Shown: positions 1 to 64,000 of the stretch, in pieces
Layout of the letters: the number at the start of each line of letters is the position of its first letter
How positions within the stretch are numbered: the first letter of the stretch is position 1
Source of the DNA: Podarcis pityusensis
Lineage: Eukaryota
Strand: one strand, 5' to 3'
Assembly (NCBI GenBank): GCA_964106645.2
Contig: CAXKZF020000232.1
DNA length: 64,000 nucleotides
Translations under genes and position numbers: made by a program
The notes under the pieces: model-generated
Databases searched by the model: none
Seen by the model: the letters and a program-made list of their open reading frames with translations, nothing else
What the model was told of the DNA's origin: nothing

Positions 1-197
1 GAACTCCCGAACGGCACCGTTGTGATCGACAAGCCGGGCCACGGGACCAGCAGGCATGGTCTTCGCACGTACGTCCGTACCGACCGAGGTTGGCACTCGC
101 CTGACAACCCCGGTGGCTACACCCACTTCGACCTGGACAGTCGCGTGGACAGGGGCACTGCTCGCATCCTGTACATCCCGCCGATCAGAAGGGGCCG

Positions 198-536
198 ATG
201 ATGCTCTCCCATGACTACACAGACCTGCTGGAAGCAGCCCGTCCCTCGTTCGGCCCCCGCATCTACGTCAAGTACGTGGGTGAGTACACCGAGACGCAGA
301 CAGCAGTGAGGACCGGCAACCCGACCCACTACTGCTATGAGGACAAGGTGTACAGCTCGATGGGCACCGCCCGGAATGCGTGCACCAAGTACCTCAACTA
401 CCGCGACGACACGATGGATGTGCACGCATTCTTCTACGTGTGGAACGCAGAGGATGAGTTCTGGCAGCTCGATTCGTACGTAGCCAAGGGCACCAAGGCT
501 GACGACCTCCCCTGGCGCAAGAAGAAGACCAAGTAG
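198..536 (+). CDS. hypothetical protein (similar to 58997..59290)
   Basis: ORF with phage-like codon usage; C-terminal W.L..YV..GT.A...PW motif shared with 58997..59290. Confidence 0.75.
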   Translation: MMLSHDYTDLLEAARPSFGPRIYVKYVGEYTETQTAVRTGNPTHYCYEDKVYSSMGTARNACTKYLNYRDDTMDVHAFFYVWNAEDEFWQLDSYVAKGTKADDLPWRKKKTK

Positions 537-548
537 TTAGGAGCCCTA

Positions 549-863
549 ATGCAGGTCAAGCTCACAGGCGACTCTTGGCCTGCATGGCTCAAGGGTCACA
601 CGCTCAAAGTGGTTCACAAGCGAGACCACTGGTATGTCACTAGGGATAACGGCGACCACCGCTTCAATGGGTGGAACGTAGAGACCGGAAGCGACCGTTC
701 CGGCTTCGGTGGTGTGTTTGTGGAAGAGGACTCACCCCCGCCGAAGAAGGTCGGCTCCCCCGCCAAGATCATCGCGATCAAGTCTGCGATCGGTCGCGGT
801 CTCGAAGACGACACCGACCCCGCAGAAATCCTGAACACCATCCTCGACATCCTCGACAGTTAG
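549..863 (+). CDS. hypothetical protein
   Basis: ATG overlaps the TTAGGAGCCCTAA RBS motif. Confidence 0.75.
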   Translation: MQVKLTGDSWPAWLKGHTLKVVHKRDHWYVTRDNGDHRFNGWNVETGSDRSGFGGVFVEEDSPPPKKVGSPAKIIAIKSAIGRGLEDDTDPAEILNTILDILDS

Positions 864-871
864 GAGCCCTA

Positions 872-1288
872 ATGGGTTACACCACAGCGCAGATCAAGGG
901 GCTCCTGCTCTCGGCAGCGAGCCTCGCCGCAGACCTCCAGGGTCTCGGTGAAGAGGAGACCAAGGCTCAACTTCTCCAGGTTGAAGCGGAGTTCGATGTG
1001 TGGTACGATAGGCTCTCGACCGGTCACCGGATGGAGGACTACTACGGCAACACCGTGGCCCTTGCCAAGGGTGACAGGATCAAGCTCCTGGGCTATGACT
1101 GGGACGACGCGTACCTCAAGGACCTATGCGGTGGGCAAGGCACGATCCACACGATCACGGACTTCGATACCGACACGGACCCACTGTTCAAAGACAAGCT
1201 AGGCGACCACCGCTACGCATGTCGAGGCGAGAACAACAGCCGAGGCTTTGTCAAGGTGAACGAGGACGACGAGGAGGAAGATGAGTGA
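872..1288 (+). CDS. hypothetical protein
   Basis: Start reassigned to ATG 872 after the TTAGGAGCCCTAA motif. Confidence 0.7.
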   Translation: MGYTTAQIKGLLLSAASLAADLQGLGEEETKAQLLQVEAEFDVWYDRLSTGHRMEDYYGNTVALAKGDRIKLLGYDWDDAYLKDLCGGQGTIHTITDFDTDTDPLFKDKLGDHRYACRGENNSRGFVKVNEDDEEEDE

Positions 1289-2651
1289 GCGGCTGACTCC
1301 CGACTCAGAACAGGAAGCGGCCATCCAGCGGATGGTCGATGAGCCGACACGGGCGGCTCTGAATGCAAGTCAGTATGGCACGGGCAAGACACTCGTGACC
1401 ATTGAGGTAGCGGGTCGGCTTGGCGGTCGGATCAATCTGATCGTCGCCCCGCTGTTCACGAAGTATTCGTGGGAGACCTCGATCAAGACGCAGTACCCGG
1501 ACGCTAACGTGCGACACATCAATAGCCTCAAGCGTGGGAAGGAAGCGCTTGAGGCTATGCTCGCAGGTGAGGCTGGCTGGTACATCATCGGGCGTGAGTA
1601 CCTGATGTCTCGCTCCGTGGTGGAGCGGGTGCAGAAGTTCTCACCCAACATCGACTTCATGGCGTACGATGAGTGCGCGAAGTGGGCCAACCGCAAGTCG
1701 GTCGGGTTCAAGAACATGAAGAAGATCAAGCCTCAGTACCGCATGGCGTTGAGCGCCACGCCAGCGGCCAACAAGTTCGACGGGCTGTACGCCATCACGA
1801 AGTGGCTGTGGTCTGATCTCGTGCCGAACTCATACTGGTTGTGGGTCGGGACGTGGTGTGCCACGCAGGAGGACTACTTCTCTGGCACCTCCGTGGTCGG
1901 TGAGAAGGAGCCGGGCAAGTACGTGCAGCAACTGCCGTGCTACATTAGGCTCACTAAAGACTTCGGTGACCCGATCGAAATGGACATCGAGGTCGAGCTC
2001 TCCCCCAAGGAGCGCAAGGTCTACGACCAGTTCGAGAAGCGGTCGATCGTCTGGCTCAAGGACAACCCGATGGTTGCCAAGTTCCCGATCACCAAGCGCA
2101 TCAGGCTGAGACAGATGAGCCTCGGTGAGTTGGAGGTCGAGTACCTGGAAGATGGTACAGAGATCGTTGGCTTCCCCGAGGATATGAAGTCGAGCAAGTA
2201 CGACGCGCTCGAAGGCATCCTCAGCGAGTACCGAGAGCCCGCTCTGATCTTGACAGACAGCCAGAAGTACGCTAGAGTGGTAGTCAAGAGGCTGGTGGAA
2301 GACGGCTACGCGGCGATGGAGTGGTCGGGTGACGTGCCTGAGAAGGAACGACACGCGATCAAGGATGCGTTCGTGAACGACACGGGTGTGGACTACATCG
2401 TGGCAACCATCCCTGCAATCGGTGAGGGAGTGGACGGACTACAGCATCGTGCACGACTGATGATCTGGCTGTCCCGGTCGGACAACAACATGCTGAACAT
2501 GCAGGCGTTCCGACGCCTGTACCGCCGAGGCCAGAAGCACCAGGTTGTGAGCATCGACATCGTTGCTCGTGACACATACGACAAGGGACAACTGAGTGAC
2601 CTCATCACGAGGGAGCTTGTGATGAACGATAGCCTGAGAAGGGCTGGTTAG
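1281..2651 (+). CDS. SNF2/SF2-family DNA helicase
   Basis: GTGKT Walker A, YDEC Walker B, LSATP motif III, GEGVDGLQ and QAFRRLYRRGQ motifs. Confidence 0.9.
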   Translation: MSERLTPDSEQEAAIQRMVDEPTRAALNASQYGTGKTLVTIEVAGRLGGRINLIVAPLFTKYSWETSIKTQYPDANVRHINSLKRGKEALEAMLAGEAGWYIIGREYLMSRSVVERVQKFSPNIDFMAYDECAKWANRKSVGFKNMKKIKPQYRMALSATPAANKFDGLYAITKWLWSDLVPNSYWLWVGTWCATQEDYFSGTSVVGEKEPGKYVQQLPCYIRLTKDFGDPIEMDIEVELSPKERKVYDQFEKRSIVWLKDNPMVAKFPITKRIRLRQMSLGELEVEYLEDGTEIVGFPEDMKSSKYDALEGILSEYREPALILTDSQKYARVVVKRLVEDGYAAMEWSGDVPEKERHAIKDAFVNDTGVDYIVATIPAIGEGVDGLQHRARLMIWLSRSDNNMLNMQAFRRLYRRGQKHQVVSIDIVARDTYDKGQLSDLITRELVMNDSLRRAG

Positions 2652-2659
2652 GAGACCTA

Positions 2660-2968
2660 ATGTTCAAGCAGATCACAGAGGACGCAAAGGGACTGAGGTT
2701 CGGACAGGGACCGTGGGGTGAGGTGTTCGACACGGTGCTGACAGCAGTGCTCGTCGGCATCCCCATGTACCTGGCAGGACACGCCGCGGCGTCGGACTGG
2801 AACCCGACGTTCAACTTCATCATGGCGGCTCTGGTCACGGCGATCATGGGTGTCGGTGCGTTCGTTGGCTGGCACACCACCTTCATGTCGGGCCAGATCG
2901 ACCAGATCAAGAAGGACACGAAGCGTATGCTGACGCAGATGAGGACGGGACATGGCTTCAAGAGCTGA
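2660..2968 (+). CDS. membrane protein
   Basis: Two hydrophobic segments; RBS motif. Confidence 0.7.
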   Translation: MFKQITEDAKGLRFGQGPWGEVFDTVLTAVLVGIPMYLAGHAAASDWNPTFNFIMAALVTAIMGVGAFVGWHTTFMSGQIDQIKKDTKRMLTQMRTGHGFKS

Positions 2969-3161
2969 GCTCGAAGAGGAATGGCGCGAGTTCCAACTGT
3001 GGCAGCGCAACCAGGGACTTGAGTACCCGGACTACCTTGAGTGGCGTGACCTGATCATCGCCCGAGAGAACATGGCAACACTCAAGTCATTCATCGAAGG
3101 GTTCGATGATGAAGACGAGATCAAGGTGAGCGAACTGAGGGAGATCCTTAAGCATGTCTAG
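2952..3161 (+). CDS. hypothetical protein
   Basis: Coupled ORF. Confidence 0.6.
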   Translation: MASRAELEEEWREFQLWQRNQGLEYPDYLEWRDLIIARENMATLKSFIEGFDDEDEIKVSELREILKHV

Positions 3162-3468
3162 CATCTTCGGGTACATGGACCCAGACGACTTGGGCCGGTA
3201 CACGAAGCTGATCGACGCGATGGATGGGACAGAGCCTTGCAGCATCGAGCCCGATCTCTTCACAGGAGATTGGGTTCGAGGTGTAAAGGAAGAGACAGCG
3301 CAGGCACTCTGCGCTGATTGTCCCGTCCTTGATCTATGCCGAGACTACGCCGTACAGGCCAAGGAACCGTACCATGTGTGGGGCGGAACCACACCAACAT
3401 CAAGAGGCATCCCGAGAGGATACAGACCGTGGGCAGACCGCTCGAAGACGGACAACTCAAGTACCTAG
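3154..3468 (+). CDS. whiB: WhiB-family transcription factor
   Basis: Four Cys (C...CADCPV...C) and HVWGG motif. Confidence 0.9.
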   Translation: MSSIFGYMDPDDLGRYTKLIDAMDGTEPCSIEPDLFTGDWVRGVKEETAQALCADCPVLDLCRDYAVQAKEPYHVWGGTTPTSRGIPRGYRPWADRSKTDNSST

Positions 3469-4139
3469 TCACAGACATGCTCAACCATCCGTCTGAGCGA
3501 GACAACCAGCGACTTGTGGGGGCCAGCCAGATCGGTAACCCCTGCGACTTCTGCTTGGGCAACTCGATGGTCGGGCACGGACAGCGACGCAACAACTACT
3601 GGATGGGTGCCCGCATCGGCACCGCGATCCATGCGGCGCTGGAGACTGAGGCTGAGAAGCATGTGGATCGACCACGGCAGAATCAGTTCGAGGCTCTTAG
3701 GGGCGCTAAGATCGAGCAGAAGATCATCCTCGGTACCATCCAGGGGTACGGCACGATCAAGTCTAAGCCGGACCTGGTGCTGACAGAGCACGACCACCTC
3801 GTGGACTACAAGACCACGACGAAGGCGAAGCTTGCGAAGATGAAGGCGTCCGGCACCGTGCCGATCCAGTACGTCTACCAGCAGCAGCTCTACGCTTGGG
3901 GCCTCAACAACGACGGCATCAAGGTCAAGCGTATCTCGTTGGTGTTCATCGCTCGTGACGGCTCGAATGAGAACGACATCTGGGTACACTCGTTCGACTA
4001 CGATGAGTCCAAGGCACTCGCTGCTTGGGATCGTCTGGACGCGATCTGGAAGTACCTGGAAGAGAACAACCACGACACATCAGGCTTGACAAGTCACCAC
4101 GAATGCTGGTACTGTGTCAACATGCTAGGGAGGATCTAA
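3429..4139 (+). CDS. Cas4-like / PD-(D/E)xK exonuclease
   Basis: GASQIG.PC..C, GTAIH, KPD, DYKT, QQQLY, C-terminal CWYC; GTG start after GAGAGGA. Confidence 0.85.
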   Translation: MGRPLEDGQLKYLVTDMLNHPSERDNQRLVGASQIGNPCDFCLGNSMVGHGQRRNNYWMGARIGTAIHAALETEAEKHVDRPRQNQFEALRGAKIEQKIILGTIQGYGTIKSKPDLVLTEHDHLVDYKTTTKAKLAKMKASGTVPIQYVYQQQLYAWGLNNDGIKVKRISLVFIARDGSNENDIWVHSFDYDESKALAAWDRLDAIWKYLEENNHDTSGLTSHHECWYCVNMLGRI

Positions 4140-8643: not shown

Positions 8644-9023
8644 TGGAGAAGTACGAAGCACTGAGGTTGGCCCGGACGTACTGGGAAATGGAGGGCAGGG
8701 GCGACACCGCTCAGTACGCCCTCCTCCTGGCACGGACAGGCATCTTCACCCACATGGAACTGTCTGCCATCTGTGACATCACCCCCTACGTTGCCCGCAA
8801 GGTGACGCAGGGGGTGGACCTCCCTCGCTACAGGTTCGGGGAGAAGTTCGATCCGCGGACGATCGACTCCATGCTGGTACTGCTAGAGCACTACCAGGCG
8901 TGGGGCAACCTGCCACGAGGGGTGCTGGACCTCATCCTGCCGTACACCAGCCTGACCGTAGTAAGCCGAATGACAGGGATTGGAGTGAGTGACCTTGCGA
9001 ATCCTGAACTTGTACAGTCTTGA
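8643..9023 (+). CDS. putative HTH DNA-binding protein
   Basis: Two HTH-like segments (ELSAICDIT, VVSRMTGIG). Confidence 0.55.
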   Translation: MEKYEALRLARTYWEMEGRGDTAQYALLLARTGIFTHMELSAICDITPYVARKVTQGVDLPRYRFGEKFDPRTIDSMLVLLEHYQAWGNLPRGVLDLILPYTSLTVVSRMTGIGVSDLANPELVQS

Positions 9024-10431
9024 GTCTCCGACCCCTCGGCAGCTTGACGCTATCGGCAGCATGCTCCGTGCCTATGAGAAGTCGCGCGGCGTAGACATCA
9101 AGGTTGTCGCTGAGAAGTGGGGACGTGGTAAGGTGCTGTGCCTCGGTCAAGCACCTGAGGGTGTGTGGTACGGGCAGGAGTTCCAGGTCACCTACTCCCC
9201 CAAGCAGTTCGAGTCCAAGGCGAACGCGGCTACCGTGTTCGACTCGGCGCTCGACAACTACTTCGGCAACGTCAGCGGTCTGCCGAACAACGCGAACGTC
9301 TCGCAGTTCTGGTACGCGGAGCACTTCGAGCGCAACTTCATGCAGAGGATCGACCCCACCCAGCCGGTGGCTGTGGACGTGGAGACTGGCGGCGTGCTGG
9401 GTGAGACTGTCACCTCACGCACAGCGCCGATGATCACCATTGCGTTCGCGCAGGGTCCGAACGCTGTCGTGCTCAAGGTGTGGGACGACCAGGAGGATTG
9501 GGAGGAAGATTCCTCCGAGGTGGAGCGCCGCAAGACGAACCAGGTGTTCCTTGTGAACTTCCTGCCGCTCATCGAGAAGCCGATCTTCCACAACGGCAAG
9601 TTCGACATCCAGGTGATCGAGTCCAACACAGGCGTTAGGATGCCTAACTGGTTCGACACGATGCTGGCTCATCACGCATTGAACCACGCCGCTCGGGAGC
9701 ACGGACTCAAGGTACTGTGCAAGCGGTACTTCGATGCCGATGACTGGGAGGCCGGGATCAAGGAGTGGATCAAGGGTAACGTCAAGGACTACAACAAGAT
9801 CCCGAAGACACACCTGGCGAACTACAACGGCTACGATGTGCTGTGGACGTACCGCCTGTGGCAGATGCTGGCACCGATGATCGAAGCAGACGAGGCGGCT
9901 CAGGCTGCACTGTTCTTCGAAATGCAGGTGGCTGACTTCCTCTCCGACGTGGAGGCTGTCGGCATCCCGTTCTCTCAGTCGCAGGGCAACTACCTGCAAG
10001 CGATCTACGCACACCAGGCCGACGAGGCTCTAGCAAAGCTGCGAGCCCTGGTCAAGGACAAGGGGTTCAACCCTGGCTCCCCACAGCAGGTCAAGAAGTG
10101 GCTAGAGGGACAGCTTGGATACCCTATCGCCTCCACTAAGGAGGAGGCGATCGACATTATCAAGGGCGAGGCACGGAACCCTGACGTGGTGACGTTCTGC
10201 AACCTGCTCATCGAGTACCGCAAGGCAAAGAAGATGATGAGCACGTACCTGCATGCTTGGGAAGATGCGTCTCGGATCGAGGGGGATGCGCGGGTCCACC
10301 CGACGTTCCACGTACACGGCACGACTACTGGTAGACTGTCTAGTAGCGATCCTAACGCGCAGAATGTACCCCGAGACAAGACGATCAGGAAAATGGTGAC
10401 CCTCGATGACCGAAACCAACTCAAGCTTTAG
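8989..10431 (+). CDS. polA: DNA polymerase I, N-terminal part (3'-5' exonuclease + thumb)
   Basis: ExoI VAVDVETG, ExoII HNGKFD, ExoIII YNGYD, TTTGRLSSSDPNAQNVP. Confidence 0.9.
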   Translation: MTLRILNLYSLESPTPRQLDAIGSMLRAYEKSRGVDIKVVAEKWGRGKVLCLGQAPEGVWYGQEFQVTYSPKQFESKANAATVFDSALDNYFGNVSGLPNNANVSQFWYAEHFERNFMQRIDPTQPVAVDVETGGVLGETVTSRTAPMITIAFAQGPNAVVLKVWDDQEDWEEDSSEVERRKTNQVFLVNFLPLIEKPIFHNGKFDIQVIESNTGVRMPNWFDTMLAHHALNHAAREHGLKVLCKRYFDADDWEAGIKEWIKGNVKDYNKIPKTHLANYNGYDVLWTYRLWQMLAPMIEADEAAQAALFFEMQVADFLSDVEAVGIPFSQSQGNYLQAIYAHQADEALAKLRALVKDKGFNPGSPQQVKKWLEGQLGYPIASTKEEAIDIIKGEARNPDVVTFCNLLIEYRKAKKMMSTYLHAWEDASRIEGDARVHPTFHVHGTTTGRLSSSDPNAQNVPRDKTIRKMVTLDDRNQLKL

Positions 10432-10630
10432 GTACGTAGAGTACCGCGGCGACGATGCGGCAGACGTCCTCGTGACACTGCTGATGAACCTCCGCCACGC
10501 AGATGCTGAGGGCGAGCGTGAGGTTCACGACGGCGGCTCAGAGACAGCACGACACGCAGAGCCCGAACGAATCGTTGGGTTCCAGCCCAACCCGGAGGAG
10601 GAACATGACGAACGTCATCCTGAACGTTGA
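10406..10630 (+). CDS. small acidic protein between the two polA halves
   Basis: 74-aa ORF overlapping both polA ORFs. Confidence 0.5.
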   Translation: MTETNSSFRYVEYRGDDAADVLVTLLMNLRHADAEGEREVHDGGSETARHAEPERIVGFQPNPEEEHDERHPER

Positions 10631-11360
10631 CCTGTCACAGGCAGAGCTCCGCGCGATGGCTCTGCTGTCCAACGATGAGTGGATGATCGGTGCCCTGCAA
10701 GAGGGTACGGGTGACTTCTTCTCGAACCACATGATGCCCGTGTGCTTCCCACAGCACCTCGTCAACTTCGGCACGATGGAGGCGTTCGCTGAGCAGGAGC
10801 CCGTCCTGTTCAAGGAGGAGCGCACCAAGGTCAAGGGTGTCCAGTACGGGCTGGCGTTCGGACGCACGGCACCAGCGATCGGCAAGGCGCTGGGCATGAG
10901 CACGGCTGAGGCCAAGACCATCATCAGCAACTACTTCGCCACGGCACCGAACTTCGCACAGTGGCGCGAGGATGTGAAGGCTGCTGCTATCGACCAGAGC
11001 AAGCGGGACCTCCTCGTGTCACCTACGGGCCGCAGGTTCCAGTCGGAAATGGTCACGACGAAGAACATGCATGCGATCCAGCGAGAGGCGCTGTCGTTCC
11101 TGCCTCAGTCCTCGTCGTCTGACATTTGCCTCATGTCTGCGATGCTCCTGCACCAGGAGATCCGGGCAAACAAAATCCCCTTCCGCATCTTCAACGTCGT
11201 TCACGACGCGATCATGCTGGAAGGGGACGAGGCTTACGCCGCGATGGTAGGGGAACTAACGGGGTCGATCATGCGGGAAGTCGGTGCGAAGATGATGGGC
11301 GATGCCGTGCCATTCCTCAGCGACTACAGCTTCGGGCCTAGCTGGTCTGATCTCTCCTAG
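10605..11360 (+). CDS. polA: DNA polymerase I, C-terminal part (palm/fingers)
   Basis: Motif A DLSQAELR, motif B RTKVKGVQYGLAFG, motif C VHDA; own GGAGGAGG RBS. Confidence 0.9.
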   Translation: MTNVILNVDLSQAELRAMALLSNDEWMIGALQEGTGDFFSNHMMPVCFPQHLVNFGTMEAFAEQEPVLFKEERTKVKGVQYGLAFGRTAPAIGKALGMSTAEAKTIISNYFATAPNFAQWREDVKAAAIDQSKRDLLVSPTGRRFQSEMVTTKNMHAIQREALSFLPQSSSSDICLMSAMLLHQEIRANKIPFRIFNVVHDAIMLEGDEAYAAMVGELTGSIMREVGAKMMGDAVPFLSDYSFGPSWSDLS

Positions 11361-11544
11361 CCATAGCCTCCTCCACAGCAAGTCCAAGGACAGTCAAGAA
11401 GTCCTTGGACTTGCTTCGTACTACGAACTCATCTTCACCGACCACACACTGCCAGCGGTTGCGGCCTAGGTCTTCGATCTCGATGTACATGTGGTGCTGT
11501 GCCTGCTCGCGGAAGACAGACCAGTAGAGGGGCTTAGTGCTCAT
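11338..11544 (-). CDS. hypothetical protein
   Basis: 68-aa ORF from ATG 11544 with an extended -10 (TGATATAGT) upstream. Confidence 0.55.
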   Translation of the reverse strand: MSTKPLYWSVFREQAQHHMYIEIEDLGRNRWQCVVGEDEFVVRSKSKDFLTVLGLAVEEAMARRDQTS

Positions 11545-11571
11545 ATTAGTACACACTATATCACATTGCGC

Positions 11572-11600
11572 TTGCGTTTCCGTGCAACATGTGCTATGAT
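11572..11600 (+). promoter_or_regulatory. promoter of tRNA block 1 leader
   Basis: TTGCGT-17nt-TATGAT, extended TG, ATG 6 nt downstream (leaderless). Confidence 0.75.
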
Positions 11601-11606
11601 AGACAC

Positions 11607-11678
11607 ATGACGCACTACGAAGTCCGAATGCACGCCGCCCTCCCGGCGTACTTCGACGTGCGTCTACACTCATGGTGA
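11607..11678 (+). CDS. attenuator leader peptide 1 (MTHYEVRMHAALPAYFDVRLHSW)
   Basis: Leaderless mini-ORF; codons match block-1 tRNAs; last codons complementary to the terminator 5' arm. Confidence 0.75.
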   Translation: MTHYEVRMHAALPAYFDVRLHSW

Positions 11679-11694
11679 CCTCCTAACAGAGAAG

Positions 11695-11731
11695 ATCCCC
11701 TGAGTGCTTGACACTCGGGGGATTTTCTGTT
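11695..11731 (+). terminator. terminator/attenuator before tRNA block 1
   Basis: ATCCCCTGAGTG-CTTGA-CACTCGGGGGAT stem followed by TTTCTGTT. Confidence 0.8.
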
Positions 11732-11748
11732 AGTATGTTCATCTACTA

Positions 11749-11821
11749 GGGTCATTAGCTCCAACGGTAGAGCGCCTGTTTTGCAAGCAGGATGTTGTCG
11801 GTTCGAATCCGACATGATCCA
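11749..11821 (+). tRNA. tRNA-Ala(TGC)
   Basis: Full cloverleaf, G3:U70. Confidence 0.95.
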
Positions 11822-11822
11822 C

Positions 11823-11898
11823 TGCGGTGTAGGGGAGTTCGGTTGTCCCCGCCAGTCTCATAATCTGGAGATCGTGGGTTCAAATCCCACCACCGTAA
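11823..11898 (+). tRNA. tRNA-Met(CAT)
   Basis: Cloverleaf, loop CTCATAA. Confidence 0.9.
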
Positions 11899-11923
11899 CG
11901 GTATAACTCAATAGTGATACTAT

Positions 11924-11995
11924 CCGAATGTACGCAAGTGGTATGCGGCGAAGTTTGGGACTTCGAAGTCAGAGGTTCGACCCCTCTCATTCGGA
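11924..11995 (+). tRNA. tRNA-Pro(TGG)
   Basis: Cloverleaf. Confidence 0.9.
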
Positions 11996-11997
11996 CT

Positions 11998-12074
11998 GTG
12001 ACTGTGACGGAGCGGCCTAACGTCGCTGATTGTGGATCAGTAGTTCGTGGGTTCGAATCCCACCAGTCACCCCA
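11998..12074 (+). tRNA. tRNA-His(GTG)
   Basis: Cloverleaf, C73, encoded CCA. Confidence 0.9.
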
Positions 12075-12075
12075 T

Positions 12076-12147
12076 GTGTTTGAAGCTAAACGGTTCAGCG
12101 CTCGGTTGTCAGCCGAGAGATAGCGGGTTCAACTCCCGTCAGACACG
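12076..12147 (+). tRNA. tRNA-Asp(GTC)
   Basis: Cloverleaf, G73. Confidence 0.9.
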
Positions 12148-12197
12148 CATAGTCCCCGGCCTGAGAGTGACACCAAGCACTTACTCCGGGGGCGTCC

Positions 12198-12270
12198 GGT
12201 CCATTAGAGTAGCGGTAATCTCGTCTGATTCTCAGTCAGAAGATCACGGGTTCGAATCCCGTATGGACTA
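12198..12270 (+). tRNA. tRNA-Glu(CTC)
   Basis: Cloverleaf. Confidence 0.92.
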
Positions 12271-12405
12271 CGGTGAGACTATAGGTACCTAGCAGACTTG
12301 TAGCATCACTACACAACTGAATAGTCGGCGTCGTAGTACCTTCCATATTCAACCGAAGACAAGGTAGAGTGTTGTGCAAGGGCCGCGAGGATCACGCCGA
12401 CGTTA

Positions 12406-12478
12406 GGCTCGTTAGAATAGCGGTCAGTTCCCCAGGCTTTCAACTTGGATGGCACCGGTTCGAATCCGGTACGAGTCA
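12406..12478 (+). tRNA. tRNA-Glu(TTC)
   Basis: Cloverleaf. Confidence 0.92.
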
Positions 12479-12479
12479 C

Positions 12480-12560
12480 GGTTCGCATGGCACAAGGTGT
12501 GCTCGCTGGTTGTAACCCAGTCGCCTTCGGGCATGGGGAGTTCGATTCTCTCGCGGACCA
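12480..12560 (+). tRNA. tRNA-Tyr(GTA)
   Basis: Cloverleaf with long variable arm. Confidence 0.85.
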
Positions 12561-12614
12561 CTTGTGTGGGATTCCATTCACACAGCCCTGTACGCTGGTA
12601 CGTGCAGGGCACCC

Positions 12615-12687
12615 GCCTCGCAAGCTCAGTTGGAAGAGCGCCGGATTGAAACCCCGGAGGTTGCCAGTTCGACTCTGGCGCTTGGCA
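12615..12687 (+). tRNA. tRNA-Phe(GAA)
   Basis: Cloverleaf; two acceptor-stem mismatches. Confidence 0.8.
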
Positions 12688-12707
12688 CTCCAAACGAAGG
12701 AGGAAGC

Positions 12708-12803
12708 ATGAATACACTTTGGTGCTGGTTCACCGGGGGACATCGTAAGGTCTACGACTTTGGGTATCCGGTCTGTTCCAAGTGTGGCATCCTACTTCGG
12801 TAG
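12708..12803 (+). CDS. small Cys/His-containing peptide
   Basis: AAGGAGG RBS; C...GH...CSKC. Confidence 0.6.
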   Translation: MNTLWCWFTGGHRKVYDFGYPVCSKCGILLR

Positions 12804-12814
12804 GAGGTGATGAA

Positions 12815-12895
12815 ATGACACGGTGGGACTGGGGAAGATTCTTCTTTGGGGTTGCCCTGTGGTGTGTATACGCTGCGGCGTCCATCGCCTACTAG
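12815..12895 (+). CDS. small membrane peptide
   Basis: AGGAGGT RBS; hydrophobic, 26 aa. Confidence 0.5.
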   Translation: MTRWDWGRFFFGVALWCVYAAASIAY

Positions 12896-12969
12896 CACGA
12901 GTGGCCCAACTGGTAGAGGCACCCTCTCAAACGGGGTTCAGCGTGTGGGTTCGAAGCCCACCTCGTGTA
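12895..12969 (+). tRNA. tRNA-Leu(CAA)
   Basis: Cloverleaf, short variable region. Confidence 0.8.
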
Positions 12970-13022
12970 CAACACAGGGTTGTGACCCACCACTCGGAAG
13001 GCTCCACCGTGACGGAGCACAT

Positions 13023-13096
13023 GCCTCTCTATCCCAACTGGTAGAGGAAGCAGGCTTAGACCCTGTACAGTGAGAGTTCGAATCTCTCGGGAGGCA
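13023..13096 (+). tRNA. tRNA-Leu(TAG)
   Basis: Cloverleaf, short variable region. Confidence 0.88.
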
Positions 13097-13104
13097 CAAT
13101 CAAG

Positions 13105-13133
13105 TTGACATCGAGCAGAGAGTGTGCTATAGT
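13105..13133 (+). promoter_or_regulatory. promoter of tRNA block 2 leader
   Basis: TTGACA-17nt-TATAGT, extended TG, ATG 6 nt downstream. Confidence 0.85.
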
Positions 13134-13139
13134 ATAACT

Positions 13140-13205
13140 ATGAACACGGTAACAGGAACCAAGCAGTCGGGCAATATCGTCCGTCTCCTCGGGGTGCCGT
13201 CGTAA
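13140..13205 (+). CDS. attenuator leader peptide 2 (MNTVTGTKQSGNIVRLLGVPS)
   Basis: Leaderless mini-ORF; codons match block-2 tRNAs; GGGGTG complementary to the terminator 5' arm. Confidence 0.78.
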   Translation: MNTVTGTKQSGNIVRLLGVPS

Positions 13206-13224
13206 AGCAATCTAAGCTCTACCC

Positions 13225-13258
13225 ACCCCACGATCTTCGGATGGTGGGGTTTTTACTT
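13225..13258 (+). terminator. terminator/attenuator before tRNA block 2
   Basis: ACCCCACGATC-TTCG-GATGGTGGGGT followed by TTTTACTT. Confidence 0.85.
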
Positions 13259-13351
13259 GGATGGATAACCCGAGCGAGGACTATCGGGCGCTGTCTTGAA
13301 AACAGTTGGCGATTGCATCGCGTAGGAGTTCGAGCCTCCTTCCATCCGCCA
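13259..13351 (+). tRNA. tRNA-Ser(TGA)
   Basis: Cloverleaf, long variable arm, GCCA end. Confidence 0.9.
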
Positions 13352-13374
13352 CACAACTCAATAGTGATACTAAT

Positions 13375-13459
13375 GGAATCGTGACAGAGCGGCAATGTGT
13401 CGGCTTGCTAAGCCGTAGCCTACCTCACGGTAGCGAAGGTTCGACCCCTTCCGATTCCG
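13375..13459 (+). tRNA. tRNA-Ser(GCT)
   Basis: Cloverleaf, long variable arm. Confidence 0.9.
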
Positions 13460-13578
13460 CACAGGAGGCTCGCATACTAGTTCGCACCCGACTTCAACCG
13501 ACTTGGGGAAGAGACAGGGTGGCTGGCGGTCCCAATACAGGTTCCCTCTCAGACCTGGCTCCGAAAAGAGAGGGGTAC

Positions 13579-13651
13579 GGATTGTTAGCTCAGTTGGTAG
13601 AGCAAGCGCCTCTTAAGCGTTAGGTCCTGGGTTCGAGCCCCAGACGATCCA
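13579..13651 (+). tRNA. tRNA-Lys(CTT)
   Basis: Cloverleaf. Confidence 0.95.
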
Positions 13652-13716
13652 CAGACTCAGACAGCCTAGGTTACAGTTCTGAGCGCCAGCGGAGGTTCGC
13701 CTCGTGGCTGGCATCC

Positions 13717-13790
13717 GGGTTACTGATGTTCAACGGTTAGCATGGCTGTCTTCCAAACAGCTCGTGGGGGTTCGAATCCCCCGTAGCCCT
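13717..13790 (+). tRNA. tRNA-Gly(TCC)
   Basis: Cloverleaf, U73. Confidence 0.88.
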
Positions 13791-13791
13791 C

Positions 13792-13864
13792 GCCCTTATA
13801 GCTCCAACGGTAGAGCAGCGATCTTGTAAATCGATGGTTGGGAGTTCGAATCTCTCTAGGGGCA
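13792..13864 (+). tRNA. tRNA-Thr(TGT)
   Basis: Cloverleaf. Confidence 0.92.
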
Positions 13865-13865
13865 C

Positions 13866-14249
13866 ATGGCAGGATACTACGAGCGGCACCCGCCCGAGGC
13901 GTGGGCCACAGCACTACAAGCACTCAAGGAGCAGAGGGGTTATGGCGAAGCATCAAGGCGATCAGGCATCAGCACTCGTGGAATTAGCAAAAGGTATCCG
14001 GGTATGGGTCTCCCGAGCGGTAGACGATATCCTGATAGCGTACGCGCTGACGCACAGAGACTACTTGACGATCGCGTCTCGTATCGAGAGGTACAGGCTA
14101 CGCTAGGTATCTCCCGCCACACAGTCCGTGACTGGTTCCCTGGTCGTGGCTGGACAGCACAGGAGGGTGGACAGTTCAAGTCCATGCTCCACTACAACTC
14201 AACAGTGACACTCAAGATGTGGGACAACAACCGCCGCAATCGCGGTTAG
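13866..14249 (+). CDS. tandem HTH DNA-binding protein
   Basis: Two HTH-like repeats (YGEASRRSGIS, SYREVQATLGISRHTV). Confidence 0.7.
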   Translation: MAGYYERHPPEAWATALQALKEQRGYGEASRRSGISTRGISKRYPGMGLPSGRRYPDSVRADAQRLLDDRVSYREVQATLGISRHTVRDWFPGRGWTAQEGGQFKSMLHYNSTVTLKMWDNNRRNRG

Positions 14250-14259
14250 GGTCCCTAAT

Positions 14260-14332
14260 GGATGATTAGCTCAGAGGCCAGAGCAGTTGGCTTACACCCA
14301 ATCGGTCGGGGGTTCGACTCCCTCATCATCCA
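14260..14332 (+). tRNA. tRNA-Val(TAC)
   Basis: Cloverleaf. Confidence 0.92.
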
Positions 14333-14334
14333 CG

Positions 14335-14501
14335 AGGTAGGTTTCCTCACACTCAAACACTTGCCAGCGCACCGGGCTTTTACCCCGGAGAGCGGGGACG
14401 CTATAGCTTCAATGGAAGAAGTGCCCGCCGATACGCGGGAGGTTGCTGGTTCGAGTCCAGCTAGCGGGAACACAGGAACTTGTGCAAGTGAGCACCTACC
14501 T
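14335..14501 (+). ncRNA. putative structured RNA with embedded Ile(GAT)-like tRNA domain (14397-14469)
   Basis: Outer stems AGGTAGGT/ACCTACCT and CACTTGC/GCAAGTG enclose a tRNA-like fold with a 6-nt anticodon loop. Confidence 0.55.
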
Positions 14502-14509
14502 ATACACTT

Positions 14510-14581
14510 TCCCCCATAGCTCAGCGGCAGAGCAGAGAGCTGTTAACTCTAAGGCCCCTGGTTCGATCCCAGGTGGGGGAG
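14510..14581 (+). tRNA. tRNA-Asn(GTT)
   Basis: Cloverleaf. Confidence 0.95.
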
Positions 14582-14582
14582 C

Positions 14583-14795
14583 GCGCGGAGTGCGAACTCC
14601 AAACACGATGAAGGGTCGCGCTATAATTAGCGACTAGGGTCGGTGCCACGGGGGTGCCGTGGAGTGCTGACCTCACAATAGCAGCGTCGCGGCTGCCGTG
14701 TAGCATCGTAGGGTTGGCCTCCTACGGGGTTGCTCGTCTGGAGATTCGATACCAGATGTTGGTGTGATTCGAACTTGCGGCACTCGGTTCCGCGC
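14583..14795 (+). ncRNA. putative ~213-nt structured ncRNA
   Basis: Ends pair (GCGCGGAGT/GTTCCGCGC); several internal hairpins; bounded by tRNAs. Confidence 0.5.
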
Positions 14796-14799
14796 ACAA

Positions 14800-14875
14800 G
14801 CCTTCGTATCAGCTCTGGCTACGAACCAGTTGAAACTGTAACGGACACATGGGAGTTCGAATCTCTCCGGGGGCA
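14800..14875 (+). tRNA. atypical tRNA-Arg(ACG) lacking a normal D-arm
   Basis: Acceptor stem, anticodon arm CTGG-CTACGAA-CCAG and canonical T-arm; 21-nt variable region. Confidence 0.65.
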
Positions 14876-14879
14876 CCCT

Positions 14880-14950
14880 TGCCCGTTAGTGTAACGGTAA
14901 CACGCCTGGTTCTGGCCCAGGTACTCTTGGTTCGAATCCAGGATGGGCAG
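14880..14950 (+). tRNA. tRNA-Gln(CTG)
   Basis: Cloverleaf. Confidence 0.93.
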
Positions 14951-14954
14951 CGAT

Positions 14955-15028
14955 GGTGAGGTGGCTGAATGGCTAGGCGCGTGGCTGCAACCCTCGACAT
15001 GCCGGTTCGACCCCGGTCCTCACCTCCA
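14955..15028 (+). tRNA. tRNA-Cys(GCA)
   Basis: Cloverleaf, U73, CCA. Confidence 0.9.
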
Positions 15029-15029
15029 C

Positions 15030-15098
15030 CCCGCCAGCATGGAGCACGAGGGTGTTCTAAGCCCGGTAGTGAGGGTTCGATTCCTTCTGGCGGGACCA
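15030..15098 (+). tRNA. atypical tRNA-Arg(TCT) with reduced D-arm
   Basis: CCCGCCA/TGGCGGG acceptor, ACCA end, T-arm, GGGT-GTTCTAA-GCCC. Confidence 0.55.
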
Positions 15099-15099
15099 A

Positions 15100-15174
15100 G
15101 GGTTATTAGCTCAGCGGTAGAGCGCTATCCTGATAAGATAGAAGTCCGGGGTTCAACTCCCTGATAACCCACCA
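15100..15174 (+). tRNA. tRNA-Ile(GAT)
   Basis: Cloverleaf, CCA. Confidence 0.95.
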
Positions 15175-15213
15175 CTTGCTTAAGATCCGTTAAGCGAGTA
15201 TACTAGGAGGACT

Positions 15214-15438
15214 ATGACTGTCACTGTTTACACCAAGAACAATTGCTTCGGATGCGGAGCGACCAAGCGCAAGCTCACCGAGGAGGGCATCGAGTTCATC
15301 GAGAAGAACGTGGACACAGACGAGAAGGCACGAGACAAGGTTATCGCCCTTGGCTTCATGCAGATGCCCGTCGTCGTGACCGACAAGGACTCATGGTTCG
15401 GATATGATCCGAGTCGGATTGCACAGATCACAGCATAA
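15214..15438 (+). CDS. nrdH: NrdH-like glutaredoxin
   Basis: VTVYTK..CFGC, QMPVV, W.GY.P; promoter TTGCTT-17-TATACT upstream. Confidence 0.9.
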   Translation: MTVTVYTKNNCFGCGATKRKLTEEGIEFIEKNVDTDEKARDKVIALGFMQMPVVVTDKDSWFGYDPSRIAQITA

Positions 15439-15452
15439 ATAGCCCCCAAGAT

Positions 15453-15486
15453 TAACCCGGCCAACTGGCCGGGTTTTCTTGTTTTT
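15453..15486 (+). terminator. intrinsic terminator
   Basis: AACCCGGCCA/TGGCCGGGTT followed by a T tract. Confidence 0.75.
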
Positions 15487-15517
15487 GGCCGGAAACTGTG
15501 ATATACTTAGGAACGCT

Positions 15518-16738
15518 ATGACACCCAAGCTTACTCGCGATGACATCACTCGCACCCTCCACCTGTCCTCTCGCGATGCTGCGACGGAACTAGGCGTAGG
15601 CAAGACCACTATCAACGACTACCGAAGGATGTACAAGGTGCGCCCTGCATCCACCAATGACCCGATCGTCGCAGAGGATGCCACGATGGAGGGTGTGCTC
15701 CAAGAGCTTCGGCAGGGCAAGACTGACCTCGCCAACCACTCGCTGTCTTTCACTACCGTCGAGCGAGAACTTGCCGATGGTTCGGTCAAGCACCAGTACA
15801 CCGTTCGTGCTGTGCCGCAGAAGGGCGCAAGCGCTCTTAGCATGCCTAACGCCGATGAGCTCATCGCTGCCATCAACGAGTGGGTCCCCGAGCAGGTGGA
15901 GTACAACCCCACCAAGTCCCCCGTGTTCGTCGTCCTCCCTGCTGACCTCCAGGTTGGCAAGGTGTCCGACAACGGTGGGACGGACGAGTTGGAGGAACGC
16001 GTCAAGCGCTCCTTCGACAGGGCAGCCGCCCGCTGCCGTGACGCAGGCGGCTACCCGTTCATCGTGATGGCAGACCTCGGTGACATCATCGAGAACTTCT
16101 ACAACACGTCAGCCCAGCGCGAGACCAACGATCGCGACCTGACGAGCCAGGTCCGCATCGCACGTAGCCTCATGGCCTACGGTGTGCGAGCACTGGCCCC
16201 ATACTGCCAGAAGATGTACGTCGTTAGCGTTCCTAGCAACCACGCATCCGTCCGTGTCGGCTTCAAGGCTGACGCTGCTCACCCGTCGAATGACTGGGGC
16301 ATCGCGATCAACGATCAGCTCAAGGACATCTTCGCTGAGCGTGAGGAGTTCGCTCACGTCGAGTTCGTCGTCCCGACCGGGCTGGAGGACTCCGTGGCTG
16401 TCAACCTGTCCATCACGGACGGCGAGGGCAACATCGTGGACACCACGACCTTCGGCTTCATGCATGGTCACCAGGCTGTCAAGGCTGACAAGATCGGTGA
16501 CTGGTGGCGCGGTCAGTCCCTCGGGCGTGGGCCTGTCGCCACGGCTGACGTCCTGCTGGTGGGTCACTTCCACTCCTACCGCAAGATGCAGGCAGGTGAC
16601 GAGCGCTGGATCGTCGTGGCACCGTCCAGTGACAACGGCTCGGACTGGTACCGCCGCCTCACTGGCGACAAGGCCACGGCTGGCATGCTGACATTCGAGG
16701 CCACGAATGGATCACTACTGCGTGAGGAGATCGTGTGA
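15518..16738 (+). CDS. metallophosphoesterase (Mre11-like) with N-terminal HTH
   Basis: ADLQVG, LGDIIE, PSNH, MHGH, GHFH motifs. Confidence 0.8.
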   Translation: MTPKLTRDDITRTLHLSSRDAATELGVGKTTINDYRRMYKVRPASTNDPIVAEDATMEGVLQELRQGKTDLANHSLSFTTVERELADGSVKHQYTVRAVPQKGASALSMPNADELIAAINEWVPEQVEYNPTKSPVFVVLPADLQVGKVSDNGGTDELEERVKRSFDRAAARCRDAGGYPFIVMADLGDIIENFYNTSAQRETNDRDLTSQVRIARSLMAYGVRALAPYCQKMYVVSVPSNHASVRVGFKADAAHPSNDWGIAINDQLKDIFAEREEFAHVEFVVPTGLEDSVAVNLSITDGEGNIVDTTTFGFMHGHQAVKADKIGDWWRGQSLGRGPVATADVLLVGHFHSYRKMQAGDERWIVVAPSSDNGSDWYRRLTGDKATAGMLTFEATNGSLLREEIV

Positions 16739-17001
16739 GCACCATCTATGGGATCAACGCCAACCAACTCACCATCCCCACCAGTCCCCCGCAGGACCCA
16801 CGCATCAACGTAGCATACGCGGAGATCACACAACTCCAGAGGCAGGTGAGTAACCTGGAGTTGACCAAGATCAGCCACGCCTCGCAGATCCAGGCACTCC
16901 AGGGTCAGCTCCTCGAAGAGATCAATCAGCGCCGGGAACTCCAACGTCTCGTGGAGGATCTGGTCAAGGACCTCACCGCAGGTGTTGACACGGAGGACTA
17001 G
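16735..17001 (+). CDS. coiled-coil hypothetical protein
   Basis: Coupled ORF, GAGGAG RBS. Confidence 0.65.
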   Translation: MSTIYGINANQLTIPTSPPQDPRINVAYAEITQLQRQVSNLELTKISHASQIQALQGQLLEEINQRRELQRLVEDLVKDLTAGVDTED

Positions 17002-17103
17002 TATGTGCTATACTGGTCTTGCAACACAAGAGGGACCTAGCGCCTACGACCAGCTAGTCACAGTCTGACAAACTACTGTCCAGGGGGCTTCGGCCCCCTG
17101 TCT

Positions 17104-17175
17104 GCATCCTTGGTGTAACGGTAACACAGCAGCTTCCAAACCTGCCAGTTCTGGGTTCGAATCCTAGAGGATGTG
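17104..17175 (+). tRNA. tRNA-Trp(CCA)
   Basis: Cloverleaf, G73; promoter TTGACA-18-TATACT at 16985. Confidence 0.88.
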
Positions 17176-17213
17176 CGCCATCCCGACAAGGACGCGCTAC
17201 TGCGCAGGCAACA

Positions 17214-17250
17214 AAGAACCCCCACCCTATACAGGTGGGGGTTCTTCCTT
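17214..17250. terminator. bidirectional terminator between convergent arms
   Basis: AAGAACCCCCACC/GGTGGGGGTTCTT. Confidence 0.8.
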
Positions 17251-17260
17251 GTTAGGAGCC

Positions 17261-17674
17261 CTAACGGGGGAGCGGCTGAGTGTTCTCCTCGACCACGACC
17301 GACGAACCGGCAGTCGCGTGAGCGTCACGCTCAACGGGTGCGGGGATAGCCTCGGTCACAGTCTTCGCGTCACCGGGACGGAAGTACACAGGCAGGTTGG
17401 CAGAGCCAAGCAGCCACTTCTCAAGCCACGGGTACTTCGGGCTAGCCACGCGGACGAGCCAGTAGTACAGGGCGATCACGCCAGCCAGCGCGAGCGACTG
17501 GATGATACCCATAGCCGTGAAGCCGATGAGTCCGGCCCGCTGGATCTCCGCGTCAATGCCCGTCAGCACGTCCGCCACGGCGGGGATCTTCGTGACGAGC
17601 CAGGCGATGAATGCACCTACGGCTGCGGGCACGTAGGTACGGAGCGTACCGATGAATCGGTCACTGCGCGTCAT
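17261..17674 (-). CDS. membrane protein (holin-like)
   Basis: Two TM segments, RTYVP...G motif; lysis context. Confidence 0.65.
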   Translation of the reverse strand: MTRSDRFIGTLRTYVPAAVGAFIAWLVTKIPAVADVLTGIDAEIQRAGLIGFTAMGIIQSLALAGVIALYYWLVRVASPKYPWLEKWLLGSANLPVYFRPGDAKTVTEAIPAPVERDAHATAGSSVVVEENTQPLPR

Positions 17675-18071
17675 GTTCTTCTCTTTCCTTCTGGTATCTG
17701 ATTGCCTTCGGGGTAGGTTCACCCGTCAGAGCGTTGCTGGGCTCAAGTCCATCTGGCGGCTGTCGTACCCACGTAGACCACAGGGTCCACAGCAGTCCAC
17801 CCGATGCCAGCAGCGCGAATCCGTAGATGATCACGCGAGCCCACAGGTATCCCTCAGACTCGAATCCGAAGATTCGGCTCAGGAGACTGAGCGACGATAG
17901 TGCTACTACCATGCTCACGAACGCCATGATACTGCGCCCCGCCGGACGGGTCCACCACTTGAAGAAGAACCCGTAGGACAGCACGAAGGACACCGCCATC
18001 AGCAGTGCGACGTTAGCAAACCATGTGCCGACAATCCACAGCACATGCTCCTCCACTGGTGTCATTAGCAT
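17661..18071 (-). CDS. membrane protein (putative holin)
   Basis: Three TM segments, WW..PAGRS.M. Confidence 0.65.
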   Translation of the reverse strand: MLMTPVEEHVLWIVGTWFANVALLMAVSFVLSYGFFFKWWTRPAGRSIMAFVSMVVALSSLSLLSRIFGFESEGYLWARVIIYGFALLASGGLLWTLWSTWVRQPPDGLEPSNALTGEPTPKAIRYQKEREEHDAQ

Positions 18072-60210: not shown

Positions 60211-60534
60211 ATGGACGACATGGAAGCAGTCGTCGCACTGCTGACCGAGGGCCTGGACATCGCTGATGTTCAGGCCCTCGGGGTCTCCCTCATGGAGAAG
60301 GCAAACCTCGCGATCCTCGAAGACCGAGGCGGAGAACTCCCGAACGGCACCGTTGTGATCGACAAGCCGGGCCACGGGACCAGCAGGCATGGTCTTCGCA
60401 CGTACGTCCGTACCGACCGAGGTTGGCACTCGCCTGACAACCCCGGTGGCTACACCCACTTCGACCTGGACAGTCGCGTGGACAGGGGCACTGCTCGCAT
60501 CCTGTACATCCCGCCGATCAGAAGGGGCCGATGA
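60211..60534 (+). CDS. hypothetical protein
   Basis: GAGGAGG RBS; 3' part also at window 1-201. Confidence 0.65.
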   Translation: MDDMEAVVALLTEGLDIADVQALGVSLMEKANLAILEDRGGELPNGTVVIDKPGHGTSRHGLRTYVRTDRGWHSPDNPGGYTHFDLDSRVDRGTARILYIPPIRRGR

Positions 60535-63801: not shown

Positions 63802-64000
63802 TCACAGACATGCTCAACCATCCGTCTGAGCGAGACAACCAGCGACTTGTGGGGGCCAGCCAGATCGGTAACCCCTGCGACTTCTGCTTGGGCAACTCGA
63901 TGGTCGGGCACGGACAGCGACGCAACAACTACTGGATGGGTGCCCGCATCGGCACCGCGATCCATGCGGCGCTGGAGACTGAGGCTGAGAAGCATGTGGA

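Follow-up and report, generated by a model that had tools for sequence, protein, structure and literature searches.

In this work, we describe two short open reading frames (ORFs), each placed directly before one of the two blocks of a transfer RNA (tRNA) gene array in a phage genome. This genome lies in a 64,000-nucleotide (nt) stretch of DNA from the Podarcis pityusensis assembly GCA_964106645.2 (contig CAXKZF020000232.1), the whole of which is referred to here as the window. Each ORF has its own predicted promoter and intrinsic terminator, and would encode a peptide made mainly of the amino acids served by the tRNA genes that follow. We regard it as almost certain that both leaders are conserved functional elements. 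Our more specific reading, to which we assign a probability of about 0.7, is that they are ribosome-mediated transcription attenuators, which would sense the decoding of some ten amino acids and control the phage tRNA genes. The case is built from the sequence and from computation, through the anatomy of the elements, their conservation, the match between peptide composition and tRNA block, and the alternative pairing of the leader RNA.

Some 24 tRNA genes, every one on the + strand, make up the array, which is located between a DNA polymerase gene and a glutaredoxin gene. Its two blocks and the parts of the second device (leader 2), which separates them, are the following:

11749-13097, + strand: tRNA block 1, with Ala, Met, Pro, His, Asp (12076-12148), Glu, Glu, Tyr, Phe, Leu and Leu
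13105-13133, + strand: predicted promoter of leader 2, with TTGACA at 13105-13110, a 17-nt spacer, TATAGT at 13128-13133 and a TG at 13125-26
13140-13205, + strand: leader ORF 2, probably leaderless, 21 codons plus TAA; codons 2-15 form the cognate run, and codons 16-21 the tail that holds the anti-terminator strand
13146-13172, + strand: segment 1, which in the minimum-free-energy fold of the untranslated RNA pairs with 13179-13200 and sequesters part of the anti-terminator strand
13191-13196, + strand: segment 2, GGGGUG, the candidate anti-terminator strand, inside codons 18-19
13225-13254, + strand: predicted intrinsic terminator of leader 2, with stem 13225-13250 capped by UUCG and a run of five U (13250-13254); the 5′ side of the stem overlaps with 13224-13229, the partner of the anti-terminator strand
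13259-13347, + strand: tRNA-Ser(TGA), first gene of block 2, found by Rfam and missed by ARAGORN
13259-15174, + strand: tRNA block 2, with Ser(TGA), Ser(GCT), Lys(CTT), Gly(TCC), Thr(TGT), Val(TAC), an aberrant tRNA-like element, Asn(GTT), Gln(CTG), Cys(GCA), a weak Arg(TCT) and Ile(GAT)

The leader-2 promoter, found a single time in the window, scores 11/12, and no promoter-like site in positions 10500-18000 ranks above it. A promoter scan found no further consensus promoter within 13134-15174, and block 2 should therefore depend on readthrough of the leader-2 terminator, a plausible dependence that an earlier note on this DNA had already proposed from the sequence alone. The start codon, ATG 13140, follows the -10 hexamer by 6 nt and has no Shine-Dalgarno sequence, so that the transcript should begin at or next to it; a leader messenger RNA (mRNA) starting at the A of the ATG, that is, leaderless, fits the 6-7 nt between -10 and ATG that are seen in nearly all leaders of the family. 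The hairpin has a local fold of -18.9 kcal/mol (z = -3.5), which none of 200 shuffles equalled, and the terminator ends 4 nt before tRNA-Ser(TGA), where it would also end transcripts arriving from block 1. A cmscan of 10500-18000 against Rfam, with E values up to 1, gave no match in 13100-13258 and no T-box, the sole leader match in that interval being a His_leader on the minus strand at 11688-11807 (31 bits, for a gathering score of 49).

Residues 2-15 of leader peptide 2 are all taken from Ser, Lys, Gly, Thr, Val, Asn, Arg, Gln and Ile, and only Cys is absent from the block-2 set. The earlier note had described this composition, which is borne out, and had placed the promoter, ATG 13140, the ORF, the UUCG hairpin and tRNA-Ser exactly where we find them. 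By itself, this peptide is only suggestive: the chance of at least 17 cognate residues out of 20 is 0.003-0.013, and that of at least nine cognate kinds 0.012-0.024. The evidential weight lies in the relatives, which were located through the C-terminal polymerase ORF and are metagenomic sequences from soils, of 52-77% identity, often contigs of about 60 kilobases (kb). From 55 fetched loci (L001 and so on), it is apparent that the synteny of polymerase, tRNA array and glutaredoxin has been kept, and likewise the order of the tRNAs. The leader-2 layout is present between tRNA-Leu(TAG) and tRNA-Ser(TGA) in 16 of the 17 distinct genomes containing this junction, among them L017, L018 and L036, from lineages with the whole array inverted with respect to the polymerase gene. 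The shared features are a TAnnnT hexamer and, 5-7 nt further on (9 in one), the ATG of a 17-22-codon ORF, whose stop is followed after 12-28 nt by a stable hairpin. ORFs homologous to leader 2 occur in 14 further non-redundant loci, and a homologous leader 1 with the same -10-to-ATG spacing in 14 relatives (it is missing in L055 and L018); 29 block-specific leaders, together with two of mixed composition, make up a set of 31. The hairpin sequences are entirely different between lineages, and too divergent to be aligned across them. Between the window and L001, the inner stem of the leader-2 terminator shows a compensatory change from A-U to G-C.

Across this set, and leaving out the initiator Met, 235 of 288 leader-2 residues (82%) come from Ser, Lys, Gly, Thr, Val, Asn, Arg, Gln, Cys and Ile, and 185 of 244 leader-1 residues (76%) from Ala, Met, Pro, His, Asp, Glu, Tyr, Phe and Leu; His, Asp and Tyr never occur in leader 2. 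Each peptide contains 8-10 of its 9-10 cognate kinds, mostly as a single unbroken run of 10-16 residues. When all 92,378 partitions of 19 amino acids into nine and ten are compared, the real split between the tRNA blocks is the best separator of the two leader families, and with the two peptides of the window alone it is still within the best 18 of the 92,378. The split follows no chemical or physical property, since it puts Val and Ile with Lys and Ser, and Asp, Glu and His with Leu and Phe. The peptides are homologous within each family but scrambled, with just 3-9 identical residues shared between lineages; in a simulation of unconstrained drift with 9-11 changes, all 14 core residues stay in the set with a probability of 0.0015-0.003 per lineage. 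Among 343 small ORFs of the same form (a -10 hexamer, an ATG and 12-31 codons) in 1.14 Mb of these genomes, runs of at least 12 block-2 residues are found in 15 leaders and in 2 others. Finally, L054 is, judging from its sequence, a natural experiment in which merged blocks come with a merged leader composition: its blocks are fused, with Leu(TAG) abutting Ser(TGA) at 13398/13399, leader 2 is absent, and its single leader (12095-12142), like that of its relative L029 (3407-3460), is mixed, with 13 block-1 and 17 block-2 residues.

The second line of evidence is the predicted pairing of the leader RNA. We folded the RNA from the ATG to the terminator loop, with the ribosome represented by a mask extending 12 nt past the first base of the A-site codon, which is an assumed footprint. 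Setting the A site at codon 10 gives, for almost every leader, a pairing between the tail of the ORF and the 5′ terminator arm that is worth -7 to -17 kcal/mol. In the window, the pairing of GGGGUG (13191-96) with CACCCC (13224-29) put forward in the earlier note is reproduced in the ribosome-masked fold, at -9.8 kcal/mol with the first 40 nt masked. For A-site positions from codon 2 to codon 14, window leader 2 gains a stabilisation of about -10 kcal/mol, which falls to between -3.7 and 0 from codon 15 to the stop; past an A-site codon of about 14-16, which is the end of the cognate run, the contribution of the anti-terminator collapses. Compared with shuffles of the free segment, the pairing of tail and arm gives a Stouffer z of -8.7 for family 2 and -7.1 for family 1. 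When arms are swapped between leaders, the tails of family 2 pair at -11.3 kcal/mol with their own arm and at -6.5 with a foreign one (p = 2e-5), and those of family 1 at -10.9 and -7.1 (p = 1e-4); in these models, the leader tail co-varies with its own terminator arm. The register of the codons follows the same pattern. In family 2, 180 of the 187 codons at which a modelled stalled ribosome keeps the anti-terminator available are cognate, against 55 of 101 insensitive codons (Fisher 6e-18); in family 1, the counts are 164 of 197 and 21 of 47 (Fisher 2e-7). Altogether, the computed conservation, composition, tail co-variation and register support what the earlier note had proposed, a leader-peptide attenuator with codons for the amino acids of its block.

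In the folds calculated with no ribosome at all, the tail is often tied up by pairing with the first part of the ORF (L018, L017, L055, L013 and the window), a candidate for the pairing of segments 1 and 2 in classical attenuators. The anti-terminator stabilisation of window leader 2 then goes from -9.8 to -5.4 kcal/mol, and a drop is computed for most leader-2 loci (in L018, from -10.1 to -0.2), not for all; for window leader 1, it hardly changes.

From these elements, the following mechanism can be proposed. Transcription from the promoter at 13105-13133 would start at or next to the A of ATG 13140 and produce a leaderless mRNA, onto which a ribosome would load at the 5′ end; in mycobacteria, a 5′ AUG suffices for efficient translation of such mRNAs (PMC4633059). 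The ribosome would then trail the RNA polymerase along the 21-codon frame, where codons 2-15 would sample nine of the ten block-2 amino acids. If decoding is fast, it would reach the tail and the stop and cover GGGGUG 13191-96, so that hairpin 13225-13250 and its five U could form and transcription would stop 4 nt before tRNA-Ser. If any of the sampled tRNAs is scarce or uncharged, the ribosome would lag in the run, the free GGGGUG would pair with CACCCC first, and the polymerase would enter the approximately twelve tRNA genes of block 2. In untranslated RNA, segment 1 would fold on segment 2 and termination would result too. The sister device at 11595-11726 would serve block 1 in this way, sampling the remaining nine amino acids, and the pair would thus constitute a demand-driven supply of tRNAs.

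This first device (leader 1) has the same parts, to which a second promoter is added:

11572-11600, + strand: predicted promoter of leader 1, with a weak -35 (TTGCGT), a 17-nt spacer, TATGAT at 11595-11600 and a TG at 11592-93
11607-11678, + strand: leader ORF 1, probably leaderless, 23 codons plus TGA
11696-11726, + strand: predicted terminator of leader 1, with a stem at 11696-11722 of -19.5 kcal/mol followed by four U
11708-11736, + strand: second predicted promoter, inside the leader-1 terminator, whose TTGACA lies in the hairpin loop and whose TAGTAT follows the U run; 12 nt separate it from tRNA-Ala (score 10/12)

The leader-1 peptide of the window contains all nine block-1 amino acids (Ala, Met, Pro, His, Asp, Glu, Tyr, Phe and Leu), and its anti-terminator is worth -11.0 kcal/mol with the ribosome on codons 2-16. 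The layout of a promoter within the terminator is kept at leader 1 in most relatives, and appears also at leader 2 of L018, L006 and L017; the -10 hexamer of these embedded promoters lies after the U run or inside the hairpin. Blocks with such embedded promoters would have a basal promoter besides the attenuated one.

Directly after the stop codons of many leaders there is a CCUCCU(UUCU) motif, identical to the 3′ end of 16S ribosomal RNA (11680-11685 in the window; also in L001, L002, L005, L014, L015, L028 and L030). In L014 and L030, the bases adjoining this motif are complementary to the -35 region of the same leader, a region that would be present in the RNA only when it is read through from the upstream block.

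At the level of codons, the earlier note had claimed an exact match between leader codons and block-2 anticodons. In the window, GTA, ACA and GGA are indeed rare codons (0.10, 0.12 and 0.10 of their synonyms in the genome) that match the anticodons TAC, TGT and TCC, but exact Watson-Crick matches are not enriched in the families: there are 78 in family 2, where 81.8 are expected from the codon usage of each genome, and 54 in family 1, where 63.1 are expected. Consequently, the three A-ending codons of the window were probably not selected, and the conserved signal is the identity of the amino acid, not the synonymous codon. The phage tRNAs of four-codon boxes, which mostly have U at position 34, may read whole boxes. 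The same note had counted a tRNA-Arg(ACG) in block 2; neither Rfam nor ARAGORN finds in the window a clean copy of this gene, which relatives carry just after Asn, and two irregular elements of the block are the following:

14399-14466, + strand: tRNA-like element between tRNA-Val and tRNA-Asn, with a 6-nt anticodon loop; 32 bits with Rfam, no assignment by ARAGORN
15027-15098, + strand: weak tRNA-Arg(TCT), below the Rfam threshold, at the same position as the Arg(TCT) of L055 and L017

Several considerations weigh against an attenuator that senses the decoding of particular amino acids. Wherever a promoter is embedded in the terminator, as in leader 1 and in the leader 2 of some relatives, attenuation cannot be the sole control. 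Synonymous codons show no preference for the exact phage anticodons, and the device cannot tell phage tRNAs from those of the host reading the same codons. With 1-3 codons per amino acid, far below the runs of the his and trp leaders, any one tRNA may evoke a weak response; the reading speed of single codons has reportedly been assayed with the his attenuator (PMC4046918), and a few codons may thus suffice for a graded response. Equilibrium energies favour the terminator (-15 to -19 kcal/mol) over the anti-terminator (about -10), and the model needs a kinetic competition between them. There is no computed anti-terminator in L002, and the U runs after the hairpins of several relatives are poor. 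Hairpins before the first tRNA occur also without an ORF (the tRNA-Trp unit of the window, L026), so part of the role of the hairpin may be in RNA processing or stability. Our statistics count related sequences, which means that the P values overstate independence, and the ribosome footprint is an assumption. The transcription start, the translation of the ORF, the termination or 3′ end, and the direction of the response have all been deduced.

Among other explanations for these leaders, the one that survives best, unlikely as we consider it, also depends on translation: the element would sense general translation capacity or starvation, or would act through Rho, through RNA decay, or in trans through the terminated RNA of about 110 nt. 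A leader with so many different codons would integrate the overall speed of elongation, and the absence of tuning to phage anticodons agrees with this idea. A terminated attenuator RNA, rnTrpL, is reported to act as a small RNA (PMC6614838), and the conserved CCUCCU(UUCU) described above also counts in favour of this reading. Nevertheless, a sensor of general speed would not be expected to divide the amino acids exactly along the lines of the tRNA genes, nor to merge them where the blocks have merged, and the co-varying anti-terminator points to the hairpin as the switch.

A second possibility, which we hold to be very improbable, is that the small ORFs are genes for functional micropeptides, located by chance in the array, so that their composition would reflect the function of the peptide. 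In each family, the peptides share a loose motif and a hydrophobic tail, for which they are homologous, every unit has its own promoter and terminator, and one attenuator leader peptide, peTrpL, has been reported to act in trans (PMC7298713). A function of the peptide itself would be hard to reconcile with an order of residues that is scrambled across lineages while composition is held, with a division that follows no physical property and equals that of the tRNA blocks, the best of the 92,378 examined, with the mixed leader of the genome with fused blocks, with tails that co-vary with their own terminator arms, and with a block 2 that has no other promoter in the window. The least probable alternative, that the elements are punctuation for transcription or RNA processing, which would terminate upstream transcripts, restart transcription and protect or guide the first tRNA around incidental and untranslated ORFs, would account for promoters embedded in terminators, for a leader-2 terminator that would also halt block-1 transcripts and for the hairpins without ORFs, but would need neither an ATG 5-7 nt (9 once) after the -10 hexamer in 31 of 31 leaders (a range set by the search pattern, so that only the clustering at 6-7 nt is informative), nor frames open for 15-26 codons in all leaders at a fixed distance from stop to hairpin, nor a composition as extreme and block-specific as the one found.

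The phage genome that carries these attenuator candidates is complete. It has 60,333 base pairs (bp), as the first 3,667 bases of the window (1-3667) recur exactly at 60334-64000, and it is either circularly permuted or joined end to end. Its G+C content is about 60%, and its proteins cover replication, structural and lysis functions, a primase and an M23 peptidase among them. Searches with tblastn using the polymerase, terminase and capsid proteins gave only distant relatives, with about 30-42% identity, in the Amigo group of Arthrobacter phages, to which the terminase and capsid proteins are only about 40% identical. A WhiB-family regulator and the style of the promoters point to an actinobacterium as the host. 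A scan of bacterial genomes gave no match, and thus no prophage and no direct clue to the host, and viral contigs scanned with a single protein gave no match either. With megablast and blastn, the region matched only single tRNA genes among 50,697 phage records, so that the leader is in no isolated phage of this collection; in a shallow check of three tRNA-rich actinophages, Streptomyces Comrade, Mycobacterium MrMagoo and Rhodococcus NiceHouse, no comparable leaders were seen.

Other features of this genome that surround or interrupt the array are the following:

3154-3468: WhiB-family regulator
8989-10431: first ORF of the family-A DNA polymerase, with the exonuclease and the start of the palm
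10503-11360: second ORF of the polymerase, with the remainder
13866-14249: HTH_23 ORF interrupting block 2
17104: tRNA-Trp gene standing alone

All the fetched relatives share this division of the polymerase, often with one or two small ORFs separating its parts. The tRNA array is also a preferred place for insertions, and relatives carry there DndB-like, VanY, Thy1 and HNH-like genes (L003, 14525-15886; L007, 12081-13010; L015, about 11760-12210; L053); in L015, the insertion parts leader 1 from tRNA-Ala. The tRNA-Trp unit (16985-17104) has a strong promoter of its own, with TTGACA, an 18-nt spacer and TATACT, and a UUCG-capped hairpin at 17083-17102 directly 5′ of the gene. When an attenuator was sought ahead of this tRNA-Trp, the promoter and the hairpin were seen, with neither an ORF nor a U run. 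In L026, a promoter and a hairpin with four U precede tRNA-Ala, and there is no leader ORF.

How does this putative device compare with known ones? The attenuators of amino-acid operons in enterobacteria (trp, his, leu, thr, ilvGMEDA, pheA) have, like the device proposed here, a translated leader, a terminator just before the genes and an anti-terminator made by the end of the ORF and the 5′ arm of the terminator, and their stalled ribosomes lead to readthrough, as modelled here; their 1:2 pairing in untranslated RNA has a possible counterpart in many of the phage leaders. Some of them, such as the ilv and thr attenuators, respond to more than one amino acid. The phage leaders would differ in their target, which is tRNA genes instead of biosynthetic enzymes, in devoting roughly one codon to each of their nine or ten amino acids, where the operon leaders have runs for one to three, and in being viral and apparently leaderless, as a complementary pair that divides the amino acids. 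None of the Rfam models of His_leader, Trp_leader, Leu_leader, Thr_leader and T-box matches 13100-13258. In the pheST attenuator of Escherichia coli, the pheM leader precedes the genes for phenylalanyl-tRNA synthetase. As proposed here, a component of the decoding machinery is attenuated for the amino acid that its leader samples, although pheST is cellular and has one amino acid, a protein-coding target and a leadered mRNA.

Leaderless small ORFs that work as attenuators are known in mycobacteria (10.1101/834739), where the polycysteine ones act on translation and not on termination. These resemble what is proposed for the phage leaders in their actinobacterial clade, in a sensory ORF at the 5′ end of the transcript and in a paused ribosome that remodels the downstream RNA (10.1101/834739; PMC4633059), and differ from them in that the phage leaders lack a tract of a single amino acid, sample ten of them and would target a terminator before tRNA genes. 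In T-boxes, the availability of usable tRNA also sets the readthrough of a terminator before genes for aminoacylation or decoding, but the uncharged tRNA is bound directly, without any ORF, whereas the phage device would read it through the ribosome. In full-text searches of the literature, we found no description of the control of tRNA genes by leader peptides, and the attenuation by leader peptides described there concerned only protein-coding operons and one to three amino acids.

A version of attenuation directed at tRNA genes, with nine or ten amino acids sampled, would widen the principle. It would also provide a naturally occurring sensor for the availability of tRNAs, which could serve in actinobacteria to report decoding capacity, and the paired complementary leaders offer a clean test case, since each one predicts a specific and opposite response to the depletion of a given tRNA. 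For genome annotation, leaderless ORFs of about 20 codons within tRNA arrays deserve attention. The reasons for which phages carry tRNA genes, and the regulation of these genes, are a matter of debate, and this genome suggests that their expression is coupled to decoding demand. We lean, if slightly, towards the broader view that a group of actinobacterial phages of about 60 kb has a near-complete set of tRNAs in two blocks, each under a sampling attenuator that switches on the matching tRNA genes, as a self-regulating supply. If this is true, the phage would gauge the decoding of its host for each class of amino acids, which would be well suited to make up for the loss of host tRNAs or for the defences that cleave them, against which phage tRNAs have been proposed as a counter-measure (PMC10264068).

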